NCBI GenBank assembly: GCA_020184695.1
Contig: JAANOX010000243.1
Location: 558,001 to 622,000, forward strand
Length of the DNA stretch: 64,000 nt
DNA from: Histomonas meleagridis 2922-C6/04-290x
Taxonomy: Eukaryota > Protista > Parabasalia
Direction of reading: 5' to 3'
Shown here: in pieces, positions 30,580 through 61,803 of the stretch
Numbering within the stretch: the first letter of the stretch is position 1
How the letters are laid out: each line of letters opens with the position of its first letter
Made by a program: the position numbers and the translations under genes
The notes under the pieces: model-generated
Told to the model about the DNA's origin: nothing
The model's database searches: none
What the model saw: only the letters and a program-made list of their open reading frames with translations

Positions 30580-31500
30580 CTTGAAATTCCTATTGTGCTT
30601 GCGAAAACTATAATCGGTTTAACTGAAGAAAACTTACAGGTGTTAAAAAAGTATTGGAATTATTCGATTCAAATTTTCCAAATTCATTTAATTTTATCAT
30701 AATAAACATAATTTATAATGCATTTTCATCACAAAAGCAAGTATTTGATATTTACATAAATTTTTTAAAGACACTTCAAAAGAAAGAAGAAGAAATTAAT
30801 CAAAATATCGATAAACTAATTCCAATTTTAATCAAACGTATATATACAGCCAATACACAAGAATCAGATTATATAATTAATTAATTAATTAAGAAATTGA
30901 GAAACTAATTGAACAAAATTTAATTGATAAAAATATTACCAAAAATATTCATTCAAAATATTTTTCTCATTATAAACCAAAAGAAGAAAACCCTAAACAA
31001 GCAAATGGAAATGATCCAATAGAAAAATACTTTTTGGATCATTATGAAGAACTTTCGAAGAATGATTGGAAACTTCATAAGAAATATATTAAAGAAGGAA
31101 TCAATCCGAAATGATGAAATGGAAAAACTTCAAGAAATATCATCACAAACAAATTTTGATTTTAATAAAACAATTGAGCCATCACTTTATGAAAGATGCT
31201 CTTTTATTAATCAAGAAAATGTTACACTAATTGATTATGCAGCATTCTTTGGATCAATGAAATGTTTTAAATATTTACTTATGAACAATGCAAATGTAAA
31301 TAACACAGGTAAATATGGAGTTGCAGGTGGAAACTAAGAAATTATTCATTTGTGTGAACAAAATCATTCATCATTTGAAGATACATTTGAAACAACAATT
31401 ATGTTTCATCGAAATGATATCTTTAAATATATTTATGAGAACAAATTAGAAAAAAAGGAACCAAAGCCAAAAAGTATTTTTCATATGATGATGTCAACGA
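30580..31500 (+). pseudogene. Decayed parabasalid ankyrin-family (DUF3447-type) gene
   Basis: TLIDYAAFFGSMKCFKYLL and YGVAGGN*EIIHLCEQ; in-frame TAA at 31335-31337 and several frameshifts. 31110-31440 is highly similar to 60690-61010. Confidence 0.8.
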
Positions 31501-31870
31501 ATTAAGATTCTTAATGAAAATATGATTGATTTTATTTATTTTTATCAAAGTATAAAAACAACACACGCCAACATTACTATGATTATGCTTTTTTAGCATA
31601 AAATTTGAAAAAGGTGTAATTTCTTCATAATTACAATCAAATATCACAAAAACATACTTTTTTATTATAAAATAATTCACAAAAGAAACATGTGAAATTA
31701 AAATCACAAAATATTTCATGATATGTAATTCTTTTAATGAGATATTCATGTTTGAAAAATGCGCACTCAGCCACTTCACCTCATCGGTTAACAACAGTTC
31801 AATTTCCATTCAAAATCCGACCTTTCTTCACTTTTGAAAAGGTTGCTAACCGAAATATCCGATAGTTTGG

Positions 31871-31875
31871 TCACA
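31871..31875 (+). promoter_or_regulatory. Initiator (Inr)-like TCACA upstream of trpB2
   Basis: TCAYW match 10 nt before the ATG; no Shine-Dalgarno-like sequence. Confidence 0.5.
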
Positions 31876-31885
31876 AAAACAAATA

Positions 31886-33274
31886 ATGAGTGCAAAAGAG
31901 ATACCATACAAGATTTTTCTTGAAGAAAATGAAATGCCAAAACAATGGTATAACGTTCGTGCAGATATGAAGAATAAACCAGCACCACTATTAAATCCTG
32001 TAACATTAAAACAAATGACAAGAGAAGAACTCAGTAATGTTTTCTGCACAGAACTTGTAGAACAAGAACTTGATGATACAAATAGATATATTGATATACC
32101 AAAGAAGATACTTGATTTTTACAAAATGTATAGACCTGCTCCTCTCGTTCGTGCGTATTGCCTCGAAGAGAAACTCCAAACGCCAGCAAAGATTTACTAC
32201 AAATTTGAAGGAAATAATACAAGTGGAAGTCATAAACTTAATTCTGCAATTGCTCAAGCCTTTTATGCAAAAGGGCAAGGTCTAAAAGGCATTACTACTG
32301 AAACAGGAGCAGGTCAATGGGGAACTGCATTATCAATGGCATGTGCATATCTTGATCTTGATTGCAAAGTTTTCATGGTCAAATGCTCTTACGAACAAAA
32401 GCCATTCCGTAGGGAAGTCATGCGTACATATGGTGCAAGTGTTACGCCATCACCATCTGAAAACACGAACATTGGTCGTAAGATTTTATCAGAACATCCC
32501 AATACCACTGGTAGCCTTGGGTGTGCAATATCTGAAGCAGTTGAAGTTGCAACGTCCACTGAAGGTTATCGATATGTTCTTGGAAGTGTTTTAAACCAAG
32601 TCCTCCTCCATCAATCCATCATTGGAGTTGAGGCCAAAATTGCAATGGATAAATATGGCATTAAACCAGACATCATCATTGGTTGCGCAGGAGGTGGATC
32701 AAATCTCGGCGGTTTAATTTCCCCTTTCATGGGGGAAAAATTGAGAGGAGTGGCAGACTATCGTTTCATTGCTGTTGAGCCTGCGTCATGCCCGAGCCTC
32801 ACAAGGGGCGTGTTCGCTTACGACTTCTGCGACACGGGGAATGTTTGCCCACTTGCAAAGATGTATACACTTGGAAGTGGGTTCATACCATCAGCAAATC
32901 ATGCAGGCGGTTTAAGATATCACGGAATGAGCCCAGTAATCTCACAGTTGTACCACGACGGATACATAGAAGCAGTAGCCGTGGAACAAACTTCAGTATT
33001 TAAGGCTGCTCAACAATTCGCACGTGTTGAAGGGATTTTACCGGCGCCGGAGAGTAGCCACGCAATAAAGATTGCAATAGATGAGGCTTTGAAGTGCAAA
33101 GAAACAGGAGAAGATAAAACAATTTTATTTGGCTTAACAGGAACAGGATATTTCGATATGGTAGCATATGAAAAATTTAACAATGGCGAAATGACTGATT
33201 ACATACCATCTGATGATGATCTAAAGCGAGGGTTCGACGGAATTCCAAAAATCCCTGGAAATATGAATGAATAA
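31886..33274 (+). CDS. trpB2: TrpB2 (TrpB-like PLP enzyme; tryptophan synthase beta chain type 2), bacterial-type
   Basis: Type-2 N-terminal extension (MPKQWYNVRAD..PAPLLNP), PLP lysine motif SGSHKLN, TETGAGQWG, GCAGGGSN, HAGGLRYHG, APESSHA. Intronless, with no trpA neighbour. Confidence 0.93.
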   Translation: MSAKEIPYKIFLEENEMPKQWYNVRADMKNKPAPLLNPVTLKQMTREELSNVFCTELVEQELDDTNRYIDIPKKILDFYKMYRPAPLVRAYCLEEKLQTPAKIYYKFEGNNTSGSHKLNSAIAQAFYAKGQGLKGITTETGAGQWGTALSMACAYLDLDCKVFMVKCSYEQKPFRREVMRTYGASVTPSPSENTNIGRKILSEHPNTTGSLGCAISEAVEVATSTEGYRYVLGSVLNQVLLHQSIIGVEAKIAMDKYGIKPDIIIGCAGGGSNLGGLISPFMGEKLRGVADYRFIAVEPASCPSLTRGVFAYDFCDTGNVCPLAKMYTLGSGFIPSANHAGGLRYHGMSPVISQLYHDGYIEAVAVEQTSVFKAAQQFARVEGILPAPESSHAIKIAIDEALKCKETGEDKTILFGLTGTGYFDMVAYEKFNNGEMTDYIPSDDDLKRGFDGIPKIPGNMNE

Positions 33275-33664
33275 AGTCAAATAAATATAGAGTTGATTTT
33301 CTCAAGGATGGATAAAGTTTAATTTCATCAAATCGAAGAAAAGAAATGTCATTTGTGAAGCTATGGTATTTTTTGGATCTGTAGGCATTTAAGGAATTAT
33401 AAATTAATGAGTACAGCAGAAAAGATGGAAGGTTTTTCACATTTGCCAATCGTTAAATAAACGTATTCGACGGTTTATTGATACAAAAAGTTATTCTTTT
33501 ATTTGTTTTTTTATTCTTTCCAGTGATTTCCATAAATTTAATTATATCCAAAGATAAATAAAATCATAGATGCTTTAAACAATTAATTTTAAATATAAAA
33601 TCAAAAAAAGTAGAGATCTACTTTGGGAATTCCTAAATGAAGCTAAATCTTGAAATTACATTTT

Positions 33665-34050
33665 AAAATCGAAAATCTTCAAGTATTACAATAACTTGAA
33701 AAAATTATATTTGATTTAAGTAAGAAAAATGTTGAATCTTCATTAAATTACTTATCTACAGAATTTTTATATTCATTCCTTTATATTATTTGTAGAATTA
33801 CTTATTCATATTTTGTTACAAAAGGTATTGAGAATTATGTTTCGAATATTTAAAGAAATTTAAAATAATATCACAGAGCAATATCATTAATATTTCCGCA
33901 CAATTTCTATTCACAATTAATAACCAAGAAGCAAATTATCTTCTTGAAAAAATGAATGAAAATGAAATGCTTGAATCAAAAATTATTCATAGCAAAAAGA
34001 TTCTATATTTTCTGCAATACATACCAAAAGAAGAACTTAAAAGATATAAA
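33665..34050 (+). pseudogene. 5-prime fragment relic of the same ankyrin-family gene
   Basis: Nucleotide similarity to 60270-60580 (gaaaaaattatatttgatttaa..gttgaatcttcattaaattac..caagaagcaaattatcttcttgaaaaaatga) with stops and indels. Confidence 0.7.
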
Positions 34051-34214: not shown

Positions 34215-36620
34215 TTATTTTGGTATGAATGAGTCATCTTTTGAAATTAACATGAAATTAATTTTCCTTGCTCTGTTTTGATTTTTTCTTCTTTTTTCTG
34301 ACATTGAATTATTTCTACTTCTTACCATATTCGCTATTCCGAATTCTCTTAAATTCTTTTTCAATGCGTTATCATTTGCGTTTTGTAACATTGCAATTGA
34401 TATTGATCTAAACTTTTCCATTTCGTCTTCTTTTTCTTGCGGCTCATTATTTTGGTTTGATACACCAGAAAACAGAAACTTAATTGACGACGACTTATAA
34501 TTCGATGGCAATGAATGTGGTAACATCATATTAACTCTCATTGAGCTTTCGTTCTGAGGTTTTTGGAACGACTCATTAATATCGAACAATATATCAGAGT
34601 CATCATTTTCTCTGAACATATATCTCTCCAAGAAATACGTTGTATCTTCTATTGAATCGAGCTCTGGTATAAAAGGCGGCTCCAAATTATTCTCGTTTAT
34701 ACCGGCAAGGAATGGGTGATTAAACACTTCGTTACTATCTTTCGACCCTAATCTTTTCTTAGGATCTAAAGTCAAAAGTTTACTAATGAAGTCAATCGCT
34801 TCATTAGATAACTCAATGTCGTCAGGGAACTCATATGTACACGACGTGATCTTCTTAAAGACGTTCTGCTCAACGCTGTCATGGAATGGCGGTATCCCTA
34901 TTAACATTTCATATGTTAATACGCCTAATGACCACCAATCGACGCCGAATGAATGTTGTTTATTAAGGACTATTTCGGGCGCAATGTAATCGGGAGTGCC
35001 GACTACGGAATCACTTTGCGTTAAGTGCTCATCTTTAGCCATTTGTCGATCAAAGATGCCGCTATATGATAAACCAAAGTCTGTAAGTTTTAATGAGCCA
35101 TCTTTGGAAATGAGAACATTATCGGGTTTAATGTCACGATGAATGATACCATTAGAATGTAAATATTGTAACGCTTTGGCAATTTGGAAGATGTAAGTCT
35201 TTGTATGGGCTTCACTAAGACAGCCAACATGCTGAAGTAACGAGTATAAGTCGCCTCCAGGAAGATATTCTGTGACTAAATAAAGATTACGTGTTCCTAC
35301 AATTGAATAATCTATGTGTTAGAGTTTAAATAATTATAATCTTTTTTTTTTCTTTTAAAAATTCCACCGCTTTTGTGTTGTTTATACAAAAGTGGCACAT
35401 AAAAAAATAAAAGAAAAAAAAAGATTATCAAAAAACATACAGAAATTAATTATGTAAGGATTGTTATGTTGAAGTAAAATATCGCGTTCGACTATAACGC
35501 GTTTTACTTGGTTCTTTTGAATGACATCATTCTTGGGTAAAACTTTGATGGCATATATATCATCAGTGATTTTCTTTTTCGCAAGGTAAACACGCGCAAA
35601 GGCACCACAAGAGATACGTTTGAGGATATCAAAATCGCTGATGTTAAGTGGCTTCTTAATTGCAGTATTCATGTCACCAGAGATCCTTGTACGACGTAGA
35701 ACTTCTTGTGCTTCTTTTAGAGCAATGAAATTTTTCCGAAGCTTTATCATCGCAAATTTGATTTTTTGATACAATGCTAAACAATCGGCATTTAATATCT
35801 CCATTGGAATCCTCGAGAGAAGTCCGACCAGAAATTCGAGTTCATTTACTGCATTAATATCTGATGATTGAATATGAAATACTCTTTCAATAATTAATGA
35901 AACTTGTAGAATTGGAAGCTCGCGAATGATAGCACTTGCTTTGTCGCCAGGCCATTTTGTGTTTAAGAAGTTTTCATTAAGTTCATTTTGGACAGAATTA
36001 AATAATCTTTGTCTTTTGGAAATTTTGTTCTCATATTCACACGCTTTTGCACACCATTTTGTATGCTCTTGGAAAAGTTCAATTGGAATATGTTGATCGC
36101 AAAGTCGACAAACAACTAAATCAACTTTATGTCCTAAATTTCGTTTTTTAATTCTTTTTTGAGAGCCTTGACGTTGAAGGATTTTTTGTGTGTCATCAAT
36201 GAAAGGTCTTTTACAAAGTAAACTGCTTAATAGCTTTGATAAGTTAAGTAAATTTTGATTTAACTTAAGACAAACCGAGCGAACTGATCTTGAAATTAAT
36301 TGATCCTCTTGAAACGAAGTCAAAATATTAATAGCGGAATTTATTACAATGAATAATTCTCCATAAGAACAATTTAATATGCTATTTAACATATCTTTTA
36401 TCTGTTGATGAATCGTTAAGCTTTCTGAATCTGTTATTTGAGTTGAAGGCGTTGGATTGAAAGTACTCAAGACTGTATAAAATCCTTTTAACTGTAAATG
36501 AAATTTTTGGTAATAATTACAAGTAAAAAATTGAGCACTTTGTGATTCAAGCAGTGAAAGGTTATCGAACGAGACAATGTGAGCAATAGTTCTATCATCA
36601 CTAATTCTTCTTTGTTTCAT
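34215..36620 (-). CDS. AGC-group Rim15/IRE/MAST-like Ser/Thr kinase with C2HC zinc finger; join(36620..35441,35311..34215), 758 aa
   Basis: Exon 1: CRLC..IPIELFQEHTKWC, ISCGAFARVYLAKK, YAIKVL, VERDIL. Exon 2: EYLPGGDL, HRDIKPDN, DFG, GTPDYIAPE, DWWSLG, RLG, PPFIP. Splicing joins INF-Y-YSI in frame. Confidence 0.9.
35312..35440 (-). other. Spliceosomal intron, 129 nt, trichomonad-type
   Basis: 5-prime GTATGT and 3-prime TCTAACACATAG (close to the T. vaginalis ACTAACACACAG motif). Removal restores the kinase frame. Confidence 0.92.
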
Positions 36621-36815
36621 GTTGTTTGTATTTGACAGAATATAATTTTTCAATGGACAGCGAATTGTAAAATTTTCATTTCCAAAGTTTTGAATAGTTT
36701 ATCAATTTTTATACAGACAAAATAAAACGTGCCGATTAAAAAAGCATATTACATAAATTTCGAAAATGCAATTTTTAAAATAAAATTGATAAAAATGAAC
36801 CTTAAGAAGAAGCCC

Positions 36816-38406: not shown

Positions 38407-39621
38407 TTGAATAATTCTTTATTTTCAAATTTTCTAGAAAACTTCAAGTTTAAACGTCTTCAAATTAATTTGAATGCATTACAAAAAAGTTCATTCACCA
38501 TAAGGTCAAAACAAGAATTTGTAAGCTGTTTTATAATAATCTTTTCTGCTATATTAATATTTGGAGTGAAATTTAGGTATCCAATTAAAGTCAAAAGGAC
38601 ATTTTATTGTGATTCACCTAAAGTATGGATGATTTACAGCGGATCTTATGGTAATATTCCAATTGATGGAAGATGGGTTGGCTGGAAAGTTAAACGTAAT
38701 TCGTATTTCGATGAATATTACGAGCTTCCAAGCCGCTTACCATCTCCTCTTTTTCCTGCTGCGGGCTTATACTCCTCACATGATCCATCACTTATTCGTC
38801 AACATCTTTACCAAATGCATTGTTGTGGAGTTGATTCAGTTATTCTTTTGTGGTCACCACCATCACGTATTATTAATAATGACAATAGCACATCAGGATT
38901 TTCTGATAAAACTCTTGAAATACTTCTTGACGCAGCTAGTGAATTTCAAATTACGGCAACTGTGCAAATTCCACAATATGATGGTCGATCAAATCAAACC
39001 ATATTTGAAGACTTTCAATATCTATATTCCAAATACGCACACCATCCATCTTATCTTCACATTCATGGAAACCCTGTTGTCCTTATATATGATCCTCATG
39101 AGATAAATTATTTATATCATTCGATATCCGAATCTCATAACAAAGGCTTTAACTTTTACTTCATTGGTTCTGTTGTCACCCAAAACCATATTGGAGATGC
39201 ACTTGAAACAGGATTTGATTCAGTTTATTCATATTTTGCATCTGAGTCATTTACATATTGTTCGAATATATCGCATTGGAAATCACTTGTAACCGATTCC
39301 CAAGAGCGAAACATTTCTTTTTTCCCGACTGTTGGTCCTGGATATGATAATGAGAAAGTTGACGTATGGAATCATGAAGCAACCAGAAGCCGCGAGAACG
39401 GATTATACTATGACCGGATGTGGAATGCTGCGATTGAAACATCTCCAAAGGTAATCATTGTCAACTCATTCAATAATTGGATGGAAGGAACACAGATAGA
39501 AACCGCAATTAACAAAAAAGGGTTCGAATTTAATGAAAGGAATTGGTGCCAAAATGGCGATGCAAATGAATATATTGAGCGAACAAAGAAATGGGTGAAA
39601 AAGTATAAAGAAATGAATTAA
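38407..39621 (+). CDS. GH99 endo-alpha-1,2-mannosidase-like (MANEA-like) type II membrane protein; start codon unresolved
   Basis: YGN...DG.W, P..GLYSSHDP.LIRQH..QM, G.PV..IYD, GFD..YSYFAS, PTVGPGYD, RENG.YY..MW, SFNNWMEGTQIE. No in-frame ATG upstream of the TM segment. Confidence 0.8.
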   Translation: MNNSLFSNFLENFKFKRLQINLNALQKSSFTIRSKQEFVSCFIIIFSAILIFGVKFRYPIKVKRTFYCDSPKVWMIYSGSYGNIPIDGRWVGWKVKRNSYFDEYYELPSRLPSPLFPAAGLYSSHDPSLIRQHLYQMHCCGVDSVILLWSPPSRIINNDNSTSGFSDKTLEILLDAASEFQITATVQIPQYDGRSNQTIFEDFQYLYSKYAHHPSYLHIHGNPVVLIYDPHEINYLYHSISESHNKGFNFYFIGSVVTQNHIGDALETGFDSVYSYFASESFTYCSNISHWKSLVTDSQERNISFFPTVGPGYDNEKVDVWNHEATRSRENGLYYDRMWNAAIETSPKVIIVNSFNNWMEGTQIETAINKKGFEFNERNWCQNGDANEYIERTKKWVKKYKEMN

Positions 39622-40625: not shown

Positions 40626-41726
40626 TTATTTAAATGACGGAAGATATTTAGGAACACTACAACCTCTTTCTTGAATATTACAAGAAGCGCAATAATTTCC
40701 AGCTTCAATACATTTCTGTAATGATTCGCCTTTGATGTAATAAGCCAAGAAACCTCCGGCGAAAGAATCACCAGCACCATTTGTATCAACAATTTTATCT
40801 GAAGAAACAGAAATGGTCTTAACTTCAATTGGTTTCGAACCACTTTCACATCCGATGGTTGGTTCCTTACCCATTGTCGATATTATAATTCTTTTGTTTC
40901 TTGGGTTTCCATAATCTGAAAGTTTTTCAATGATGTTCCGAACATCAACTGATTCTTCAGGAACATCATTTTCTACAAGATTTAATTTCTTGGCCAAACA
41001 TATGATTTCAGTATTGTTACCAAAAACAATGCTTGAAACTCTAAATAATTCACGAAGTGATGGCCATGCTTCGGAATCAATAGCAGTTGGTGATGACAAA
41101 CTGATTGCAAGAGGGATATTACGATGACAACATTCAGCTGCTACAGCTAATCCAGTCCGATCTGATGAACGTAAGAAAAAAGTACTCATCAATACAACTT
41201 TAGCATTTTCTAATGCTTCTAATACTTCAGGTGTATCCCATCGATCAAATTCAAAATTGCCTGATGCTGCTACAGATGCAACAATTGATCGATTACCATT
41301 ACATACTAAAATAGCACTACAACCTGTATATTCTTTTTCTATTGTTTGATATAAACATTGAACACCAGATTTGTTCATGATACTACGAAGAACTTCTTGA
41401 TTAGAATCATTTCCAACTGCACCAACAATTGCTGTTTTACCTTCTTTTTGCATCATCCATTGACTCATCACAAGTGTGTTTTGGCATGCTCCTCCACATG
41501 TCATATATGAATTTTTATTGTTTACTGTTTCATTGATTAATGGTTGATAACGTGAATCTGCTAAAATGGCATCATCATTCTTCAAATCCCATTTATGCAA
41601 GTAAGCTTCTTCAACTTCAACTGTTGCATCAATGAGTGGGTTGCAGAATGCTAAAATCATTATTGTGAGGTGATTTTCTCTATTCACTTTTTCAATGATG
41701 CTTGGCCTCAGGCAAACTGTTAGCAT
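40626..41726 (-). CDS. Adenosine kinase (PfkB family)
   Basis: NPLID, GGACQNT, GAVGND, TGCSAILV, VFGN..E, DTNGAGDSFAGGF, and a C-terminal A...I...GC. Confidence 0.85.
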   Translation of the reverse strand: MLTVCLRPSIIEKVNRENHLTIMILAFCNPLIDATVEVEEAYLHKWDLKNDDAILADSRYQPLINETVNNKNSYMTCGGACQNTLVMSQWMMQKEGKTAIVGAVGNDSNQEVLRSIMNKSGVQCLYQTIEKEYTGCSAILVCNGNRSIVASVAASGNFEFDRWDTPEVLEALENAKVVLMSTFFLRSSDRTGLAVAAECCHRNIPLAISLSSPTAIDSEAWPSLRELFRVSSIVFGNNTEIICLAKKLNLVENDVPEESVDVRNIIEKLSDYGNPRNKRIIISTMGKEPTIGCESGSKPIEVKTISVSSDKIVDTNGAGDSFAGGFLAYYIKGESLQKCIEAGNYCASCNIQERGCSVPKYLPSFK

Positions 41727-60235: not shown

Positions 60236-61803
60236 ATGGGAGGAAATCAAAGTCACACAACAACTTACAAAGGAAACCTTCAAATATTACAAGATCTAGA
60301 AAAAATTATATTTGATTTAAATGAAAATAATATTGATCAATTAGTTGAATCTTCATTAAATTACATTTCTTTAGAATTTCAATATTCTTTTCTATATATC
60401 ATTTGTCGAATTATTTATTCATATTTTGTGTCACGTGGCTATGAAAAATTATGTTTCAAATATTTACAAACAATTGAGGCAAAATCAAGTTATAAGATTA
60501 TCAAAGTTTTCACACAATTATTATTATCAACTGATAGTCAAGAATCAAATTATCTTCTCGAAAAAATGATTGAAGACGAAAGCAAACAGAAGAACTTAAA
60601 GAGAATAATATTGAACTGCATAAGAAATTAATTAAGGAAGGACATAATCCGAATGAAATTCCGAAAATAATTCGAAAAGATGAAGTAGAAAAACTTCAAG
60701 AAATATCATCACAAACAAATTTTGATTTTAATCAAACAATTGCACCATCACTTTATGAAAGATGTTCATTTATAAATAAAAAAAATGTTACATTAATTGA
60801 TTATGCAGCATTTTTTTCTGCGATTAAATGTTTTAAATATTTACTTATGAATGGTTCAAAAGTAGAAAACGCAGGTAAATATGCAGTTGCAGGTGGAAAT
60901 GAAGAAATCATTCATTTATGTGAACAAAATCATTCGACATTTGATAAAGCATATGAAACAGCAATTGAACTTCATCGAAATGATATCTTTAGATATCTTT
61001 ATGAAAATAAATTAGAAAAAATTAATAAATTAGAAGAATTAGGGAAGAAATGTGTTTTGCATGACAATTATAATATTCTTTCATTTTTAGAAAAAGAAGG
61101 CATGCAATCTGATAAACTTATTCTTATTAAATCAATCAATAATGGGAAATTATTTATTTTCCAATATTTTCTAGATAAAAAATCAAAACCAATAAAATTT
61201 TCAGAGATTTCAACTTTTTCTGGTAATAAAGAACTGTTTAATTACCTTATTAAACATAAATATATTGACATAAAACAAAATGTTTGAAAAAATTGTTTGA
61301 ATTTTATTTTAATAATTTAATATTTCAAAATAATATTTGGAAATTATTCAAATTATTTCAAACAGCACTTATGAAAGCATCTTGGAATGGTCATACAGAA
61401 ATAGTTAAATTACTTCTTGAACAAGAAGGAATTGATATTAATGCTAAAGATATTTATTTGTTTTATTTAAAATTTATTTTAATAATTTTATATTTCAAAA
61501 TGATATTCTGGAATTATTCAAATTATTTCAAACAGCACTTATGTATGCATCTTGGAATGGTCATACAGAAATAGTTAAATTCCTTCTTGAACAAGAAGGA
61601 ATTGATATTAATGCTAAAGATATTTATTTGTTTTATTTAAAATTTATTTTAATAATTTTATATTTCAAAATAATATTTGGAAATTATTTAAATTAATTAA
61701 AACAGCACTTATTTGGGCATCTTTAAATGACCACACAGAAATAGTTGGTTTAATTAAAAAGAAACTTGAAATTAATAATTTTTATAAAGTACCTTTTAAA
61801 TAA
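60236..61803 (+). pseudogene. Ankyrin-repeat (DUF3447-type) gene, interrupted by a frameshifting deletion near 60580 and three 80-nt spacers in the ankyrin array; pseudogene or non-canonically spliced gene
   Basis: MGGNQS start; LIDYAAFFSAIKCFKYLL; YAVAGGNEEIIHLCEQ; TALMKASWNGHTEIVKLLLEQEGIDINAKD repeats; final stop at 61801-61803. Confidence 0.75.
61282..61740 (+). repeat. 170-nt tandem repeat (ankyrin-coding segment plus AT-rich spacer), about 2.7 copies
   Basis: aacagcactt recurs at 61361, 61531 and 61701. Confidence 0.95.

Follow-up and report, generated by a model that had tools for sequence, protein, structure and literature searches.

Lone TrpB sequences, in which the β-subunit of tryptophan synthase occurs without the rest of the pathway, have been described in several gut protists; TrpB transcripts of this kind were reported from Mixotricha paradoxa (PMC12483993, ISME J 2025), and the same trpB-only pattern was noted in that study for Pseudotrichonympha grassii, for the published transcriptome of Histomonas meleagridis and for ciliates. 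Pyrococcus horikoshii offers a further precedent, that of a lone trpB2 in a genome devoid of other trp genes (PMC1854888), and the TrpB2 of Thermococcus kodakarensis acts in indole salvage (Hiyama et al. 2014, as cited in PMC11085991). The gene considered here lies in a window of 64,000 nucleotides (the whole stretch of DNA analysed, positions 558,001 to 622,000 of the forward strand of contig JAANOX010000243.1, assembly GCA_020184695.1, H. meleagridis 2922-C6/04-290x) and encodes a TrpB2-type, pyridoxal phosphate (PLP)-dependent enzyme, referred to below as Histomonas TrpB2. The existence and the expression of a Histomonas trpB were already known in passing; the Histomonas genome paper is silent on both tryptophan and gene transfer (PMC8529796), and a full-text search of the literature on Histomonas or parabasalids together with tryptophan synthase returned nothing further on this gene. 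What is new is its assignment to the TrpB2 class, its Mediterraneibacter-like donor lineage, the evidence for its integration, its poly(A) site, its amelioration and the constraint under which it evolves. As a whole, the probable explanation is that a trpB2 gene from a Mediterraneibacter-like bacterium has been domesticated and serves Histomonas as an indole-to-tryptophan enzyme.

The open reading frame (ORF) runs unbroken for 462 codons from ATG to TAA and carries a single Pfam domain, PALP; no in-frame start codon precedes this ATG, and the N-terminus lines up with those of the bacterial homologues. Class was decided by a score that exceeds the curated cut-offs of both TrpB2 models and falls short of the TrpB1 cut-off: the ORF reaches 685 bits against NF009057 (the NCBIfam equivalog “TrpB-like pyridoxal phosphate-dependent enzyme”, cut-off 366) and 601 bits against TIGR01415 (cut-off 519), and only 154 bits against TIGR00263, the model of canonical TrpB or TrpB1, whose cut-off is 392 and which thus excludes it. 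Its best solved relatives are the Sulfolobus TrpB2 chains 6HUL_B, 4QYS_B and 6HTE_B (E 1e-108 to 1e-118), with 6hul_B as the top match (E 4.6e-118), while TrpB1 structures match at 1e-36 or weaker. The predicted fold agrees, TrpB2 chains occupying ranks 1-5 with template-modelling (TM) scores of 0.75-0.82 by target; this model is of moderate quality because the underlying alignment was shallow (predicted local distance difference test, pLDDT, 63.6; predicted TM-score, pTM, 0.65), and it was used only to confirm the fold match. The PLP lysine is K117 in the motif SGSHK (113-117), aligned to the lysine of solved TrpB2, and the motif TETGAGQWG with the catalytic glutamate E139, the phosphate loop GGGSN (269-273) and the C-terminal GLTGTG (416-421) are the same in 80 out of 80 bacterial homologues. 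Since all catalytic motifs are present in an intact frame, the original prediction of a full-length, intronless TrpB2 with its PLP lysine (SHK) stands, and the enzyme is apparently catalytically competent.

Trichomonads are generally amino-acid auxotrophs, for which a gain of tryptophan is valuable in itself, and both caecal bacteria and co-cultured Escherichia coli make indole by tryptophanase. In Histomonas, the product of the gene would most likely be a cytosolic PLP enzyme, as it has no N-terminal extension relative to the bacterial proteins. By analogy with characterised TrpB2, an aminoacrylate would be formed on K117 from O-phospho-L-serine (or L-serine) and indole would be added to it to yield L-tryptophan; indole released by the tryptophanase of bacterial prey and neighbours would thereby be captured, the gain being tryptophan as well as the removal of a toxic signal molecule. 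Tight indole binding is a property of TrpB2 enzymes (Hettwer and Sterner 2002, as cited in PMC11917138), and those characterised prefer O-phospho-L-serine over L-serine (Busch 2014, as cited in PMC11917138). The earlier proposal that TrpB2 condenses indole and serine with high indole affinity is, as far as that citing paper goes, right about indole and imprecise about serine. O-phosphoserine is a live trichomonad metabolite: the Trichomonas vaginalis cysteine synthase makes use of it, and it has been measured in both T. vaginalis and Tritrichomonas foetus (PMC5739422). The substrates, the direction of flux and the physiological benefit are what we infer from these parallels, and salvage of indole by Histomonas TrpB2 is a reasonable inference on this basis. 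The further suggestion of the original prediction, a shift in the indole and AhR-ligand pools of the host gut, is speculative, and the host concerned is a bird.

The same chemistry could also be put to a different use, the benefit lying in the detoxification of indole or the removal of a signal, with indole acting as an anti-grazing defence of the prey and tryptophan as a by-product. Such a use is compatible with salvage and not exclusive of it, and the worth of tryptophan to an amino-acid auxotroph speaks against treating it as incidental; we hold this reading to be rather unlikely. What speaks for it is the high indole affinity of TrpB2 enzymes together with the up-regulation of E. coli TnaA in co-culture with Histomonas, discussed in that study as a defence against grazing and phagocytosis (PMC6391000).

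More doubtful is the idea that the Lachnospiraceae “TrpB-like” subfamily, and the Histomonas copy with it, catalyses some other PLP-dependent β-replacement or elimination, using another nucleophile or deaminating serine or phosphoserine. NCBIfam purposely chose a name that makes no commitment, and TIGR01415 has the status of a “hypothetical equivalog”; conservation within the subfamily is unusually high, with 237 of 457 columns (52%) invariant over 80 species, its bacterial genes stand in varied, non-trp contexts, and for lone trpB2_o genes a different role has been suggested (PMC1854888). Against this, E139 and the entire active-site set of characterised TrpB2 are intact, and every TrpB2 protein assayed so far makes tryptophan, in so far as the accounts in PMC11085991 and PMC11917138 extend; we regard a different chemistry as distinctly unlikely. 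The surroundings of the bacterial genes give no functional clue, because the gene stands alone with different neighbours in each genome: no shared synteny hinting at function was seen in the donor-like genomes, the neighbours differing at every locus inspected. In Faecalicatena contorta, a second PALP-family gene of 449 amino acids (L086:11880-13229) lies about 4.5 kb from the TrpB2 gene, in a cluster with D-Glu cyclase, carboxyltransferase-like and class IV aminotransferase genes.

Turning to ancestry, a word-index search of 5.8 billion proteins returned thousands of matches, the best 120 of which share 83-88% identity with Histomonas TrpB2; the named ones among these 120 belong to Lachnospiraceae, Faecalicatena contorta, Candidatus Scatomonas and similar bacteria, and no eukaryote name occurs among them. 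A scan of GTDB, with one genome per species, gave 595 relatives, all bacterial; the best 80 of the 595 (81-88% identity) come almost entirely from gut Lachnospiraceae and other Clostridia, including several metagenome-assembled genomes (MAGs) from chickens. In a maximum-likelihood tree (LG+C20+F+G4) composed of Histomonas and bacterial rows, Histomonas TrpB2 groups with five Mediterraneibacter-like rows (L004/L002/L007/L005/L011) at 98/85 (ultrafast bootstrap, UFBoot, and Shimodaira-Hasegawa-like approximate likelihood-ratio test, SH-aLRT), and this group joins a Dorea-like group at 94/96, all of these support values being rough. Two of the five rows are “uncultured Mediterraneibacter”; the others are a MAG from chicken that bears the label Ruminococcus, Lachnospiraceae bacterium M18-1 and a single contig from a metagenome. 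As one eukaryote is nested within a shallow bacterial subclade, the direction of transfer was from bacterium to protist. Horizontal gene transfer from gut Clostridia or Lachnospiraceae, which the original prediction had put forward with protein comparison and phylogeny as its check, is thus supported by both.

Among the 120 best database proteins there is no supported specific sister that might be another protist. The topologically nearest match (P0006) was considered as a protist candidate and rejected, since its gene is flanked by GGDEF and SBP_bac_5 genes and is therefore bacterial. Contigs were inspected for four top matches: on three, the gene is surrounded by ordinary bacterial genes; the fourth contig is short and carries a bacterial-type gene with high third-position GC (GC3). 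In the closest named relative, an uncultured Mediterraneibacter MAG, a Rep_trans rolling-circle protein and a Tn916-type tyrosine integrase are encoded directly upstream of trpB2 (L004:1971-4521); a mobile element therefore borders trpB2 in at least one donor-like genome.

The gene might instead predate Histomonas and go back to one acquisition by an early parabasalid, from which the TrpB of Mixotricha and Pseudotrichonympha would descend as well. The lone trpB transcripts of these two flagellates would fit, as would the 454 aligned positions used for the tree in PMC12483993, a length like that of TrpB2. A shared ancient origin is nonetheless very unlikely: Histomonas sits inside the shallow Mediterraneibacter-like subclade, the genomes of T. 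vaginalis and T. foetus were used in PMC12483993 and no trpB is reported there from either, and that study says just that the Mixotricha TrpB is closest to the Pseudotrichonympha TrpB.

High protein identity does not by itself date the acquisition from a bacterium. Pairwise identity among the 80 bacterial species is 78-98% (median 84%), and Histomonas TrpB2 is no nearer to bacteria than bacterial species are to each other. At the DNA level, it shares 72-75% nucleotide identity with any relative and 0.33-0.49 of third positions; the nonsynonymous divergence (dN) is about 0.09, and the synonymous divergence (dS) is saturated and not computable. A very recent transfer, as 85-88% identity might suggest, was accordingly rejected, because the bacterial family is itself hyper-conserved and the synonymous sites are saturated. 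DNA homology to bacteria ends at the borders of the ORF, and blastn (word size 9) and tblastx found no remnants of bacterial flanking genes around it. Relative synonymous codon usage (RSCU) correlates with that of 19 host ORFs at r = 0.76, within the host range of 0.63-0.96; with the bacterial genes that are closest in the phylogeny, r is -0.24 to -0.02. GC3 along the ORF is 0.20 in the first 230 nt, 0.39-0.42 mid-gene and 0.31 thereafter; amelioration or codon selection has therefore been uneven along its length.

Twenty-seven substitutions are specific to Histomonas with respect to all 14 rows of the wider group; five of them introduce Asn and three Ile, as one would expect where the genome is AT-rich. 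Just two of the 27, the conservative changes Y11F and V136I, fall in columns that are invariant in bacteria, as against about 14 expected by chance (binomial P ~1e-6); selection in the protist is not all that this test measures, because the branch may include time spent in the donor lineage. A frame of 462 codons that is intact after synonymous saturation, polyadenylated transcripts and this constraint argue strongly for a working gene. The opposite case, a neutral passenger that is transcribed and no longer useful, would draw on a terminal branch about twice the median length (0.25 vs 0.13) and on a low-depth variant of another strain, A375V, which hits an invariant alanine; with the intact ORF, the intact motifs and the scarcity of changes in invariant columns set against it, we consider it highly improbable.

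The gene is integrated in the parabasalid genome. Read evidence was taken from Logan short-read contigs rather than from raw reads, by which expression level and transcript ends are merely indicated. In the genome-project sample X1, one contig of 2530 nt (31425-33954) bridges both junctions of the gene with host DNA at a depth of 632 (flanking contigs, 691 and 496); in X2, also from the genome project, one contig of 2486 nt (31469-33954) does so at a depth of 484 (flanks, 474-505). A contig from a separate study of 2023, X3 (31412-33009), crosses the 5' junction. Flank-spanning long reads of even coverage had been suggested as a check for this locus; here, short-read contigs of two strains link the gene to both flanks at flank-like depth. 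An identical protein is encoded on WSYJ01000157.1 (998,801 bases) of GCA_020186115.1, an assembly of 43.4 Mb made for H. meleagridis 2922-C6/04-10x from Nanopore and Illumina data (PMC13735942), and the gene has the same location in a second sample. Sequencing was done on mono-eukaryotic, monoxenic cultures whose sole bacterium was E. coli DH5-alpha (PMC8529796). A 2013 run of a slightly different strain, X8, holds the gene too, with 3 differences in 640 nt compared with 6 in 1119 nt of the neighbouring kinase. Within the ORF, X8 reads T for C at position 33009, the change A375V in a column that does not vary across the 32 aligned sequences, which may be an error because it depends on a single contig at depth 3.4; the other difference within the gene, 32095 T>C, is synonymous.

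Transcription of Histomonas TrpB2 yields a polyadenylated mRNA. In X3, the contig for 33041-33289 runs on with 22 non-templated A's, where the genome reads GAGTTG from 33290, a result that answers the suggested search for a poly(A) transcript; depth in X3 is zero over 33339-33672, the spacer downstream of the gene. X3 and X8 carry the label “RNA?”, which is a guess; for X3, the poly(A) tail and the zero depth in the downstream spacer speak for RNA. Upstream, no Shine-Dalgarno sequence precedes the Histomonas gene, compared with AAAGGAG at 6-10 nt before the start in 10 of 10 bacterial homologues checked. An initiator (Inr)-like TCACA had been predicted in its place; the TCACA and the missing Shine-Dalgarno were confirmed, whereas the motif on its own was rejected as statistical evidence, TCAYW being found within 40 nt upstream of 6 of the 20 long ORFs of the window, no more than chance (25% random background). 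One cDNA-type contig of X8 (contig 30, depth 2.7) begins exactly at the A of TCACA.

That the ORF is an assembly chimera, or a Lachnospiraceae contaminant mis-joined to protist DNA, might be argued from its GC content (0.405 vs ~0.27 in the flanks), its very high protein identity to bacteria and the one chimeric phage-containing contig known elsewhere in the assembly (PMC8529796), but contamination is ruled out, and this reading effectively refuted, by the bridging contigs of two strains, the poly(A) tail, the recovery of the gene in three studies, the monoxenic E. coli culture, the lack of a Shine-Dalgarno sequence, the host-like codon usage and the low nucleotide identity to any bacterium.

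In the history that best accommodates these data, a stand-alone trpB2 would have passed from a Mediterraneibacter-like gut Lachnospiraceae to the nuclear genome of H. meleagridis or of a recent ancestor. Only the ORF would have survived, with the loss of the bacterial ribosome-binding site; a short 5' leader of host type and a polyadenylation site of the TAAA type would have been gained, and the sequence would have drifted to host codon usage and AT-rich amino acids while being retained by purifying selection. What the data themselves demonstrate is the identity of the gene, its integration, its transcription, its bacterial ancestry and the selective constraint on it. Several points weigh against this account of a domesticated indole-to-tryptophan enzyme. 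The NCBI name of the Lachnospiraceae subfamily goes no further than “TrpB-like”. The bootstrap did not fully converge (correlation 0.929), which is why the support values of the tree are rough. Two low-GC Lachnospiraceae (L014, L003) correlate with host codon usage at r = 0.53-0.77, and a donor of this type would need no amelioration. Part of the Histomonas branch was perhaps spent in an unsampled bacterial donor lineage. Finally, the transcription start is uncertain, because TCACA occurs at chance frequency and the X3 contig extends well upstream of it, to 31412.

Table 1. Features of the trpB2 locus of Histomonas meleagridis, in window coordinates.
Feature	Position	Strand	Remarks
TrpB2-type (TrpB-like PLP-dependent enzyme) coding sequence	31886..33274	+	Intronless, 462 aa; TAA stop 33272-33274; NF009057 685 bits
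Stretch spanned by single short-read contigs bridging both gene/host junctions	31425..33954	.	X1 and X2 contigs
Stop codon within TAAA, 15-nt 3' untranslated region (UTR), poly(A) addition after 33289	33272..33289	+	X3 contig
Inr-like TCACA, candidate transcription start at A (31873), 13-nt 5' UTR	31871..31875	+	Weak: one X8 contig

The neighbours of the gene are of eukaryotic type, as had been predicted for both sides: a Ser/Thr kinase gene lies directly downstream, and two R2R3-Myb, kelch, RING, ankyrin and UBA genes are found in the vicinity, together with GH99 and PfkB genes. The predicted lack of trpA or operon neighbours likewise held within the window; a scan of the neighbouring genes for domains found no tryptophan-pathway domain, hence no adjacent trpA and no trp operon, and the 64 kb contain no second TrpB-like sequence. 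The GH99 endo-alpha-mannosidase-like gene (Glyco_hydro_99, E 4e-66) and the PfkB-family sugar kinase gene are located 5-8 kb from the TrpB2 gene, at 38629-39621 (+) and 40626-41726 (-); both families are often bacterial in origin in trichomonads. The downstream kinase (34215-36653, minus strand) is split, ORF 35382-36653 ending with Pkinase profile positions 3-69 and ORF 34215-35042 holding positions 153-263; the middle of the domain is missing between the two, which could reflect an intron, a frameshift or a pseudogene. The public gene call for this kinase (34215-35750) gives 468 residues from 1536 nt, so the underlying model must be spliced or gapped. On the upstream side of the TrpB2 gene and close to it, a dispersed repeat (31103-31455) overlaps a 97-aa ankyrin-like ORF (31044-31337) and has a second copy 29 kb away, at 60669-61021, with 86% identity; its summed contig depth in DNA runs is about 1000 times that of the adjacent single-copy DNA, and the repeat family is therefore present in very high copy in the genome.

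Blackhead disease of turkeys and chickens, for which many countries have no licensed treatment, is due to Histomonas meleagridis, a parasite that cannot be grown without bacteria. A bacterial-type enzyme without a counterpart in the bird, tying tryptophan to caecal indole, would be a concrete piece of this bacterial dependence and at the same time a parasite-specific metabolic step. Bacterial genes are commonplace in parabasalids; the present one is a well-documented uptake from the dominant bacteria of the host's gut, one close relative being a chicken-gut MAG, and it is one in which the steps of domestication are all visible, from the lost ribosome-binding site to the poly(A) site and the shifts in codons and amino acids. 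It also carries a caution, namely that a protein identity of about 88% to bacteria can coexist with saturated synonymous divergence. A broader view, which we put forward tentatively and think unlikely as it stands, would treat lone TrpB as an “indole-capture module” that anaerobic gut protists (rumen ciliates, termite flagellates and Histomonas) took into service more than once, each independently of the others; the module of Histomonas would be fed by the trichomonad O-phosphoserine pool, and cross-feeding between tryptophanase and TrpB2 would be part of the strict dependence on live bacteria. If such a loop existed, the supply of tryptophan and the bacterial output of indole would be levers on the growth of the parasite in the caecum.

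Compared with the lone trpB of other gut protists (PMC12483993), the situation in Histomonas is similar in that only the last enzyme of tryptophan synthesis is expressed, which was read there as conversion of indole and serine to tryptophan; for Histomonas, however, that study offers neither a class nor a donor, and neither the genomic context nor an analysis of selection, and its supplement is without a Histomonas sequence or analysis. With canonical TrpB1 (TIGR00263), the Histomonas protein shares the nature of a fold-type II PLP enzyme and the same catalytic lysine, glutamate and phosphate loop; by contrast, it has an N-terminal extension, a Trp in place of His in the TGAGQ(H/W)G loop and no TrpA partner gene nearby. 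With the archaeal TrpB2 of Saccharolobus solfataricus (6HUL_B, 6HTE, 4QYS) and T. kodakarensis, it falls in the same subclass by sequence and by predicted fold. The identity between the two is just ~42%, and the Ser of the C-terminal GxTGxG loop is replaced by Thr, a trait of the entire Lachnospiraceae subfamily; 6HUL_B is moreover partnered with a TrpA, of which there is none near the Histomonas gene. The closest likeness is to the TrpB-like proteins of Lachnospiraceae (Mediterraneibacter, Dorea, Faecalimonas and Faecalicatena contorta), which are of equal length, 81-88% identical in amino acids over the full length and identical in their motifs, and whose gene also stands alone, outside any trp operon; what sets the Histomonas gene apart from them is that it resides on a eukaryotic chromosome, is polyadenylated, lacks a Shine-Dalgarno sequence and follows the codon usage of its host.

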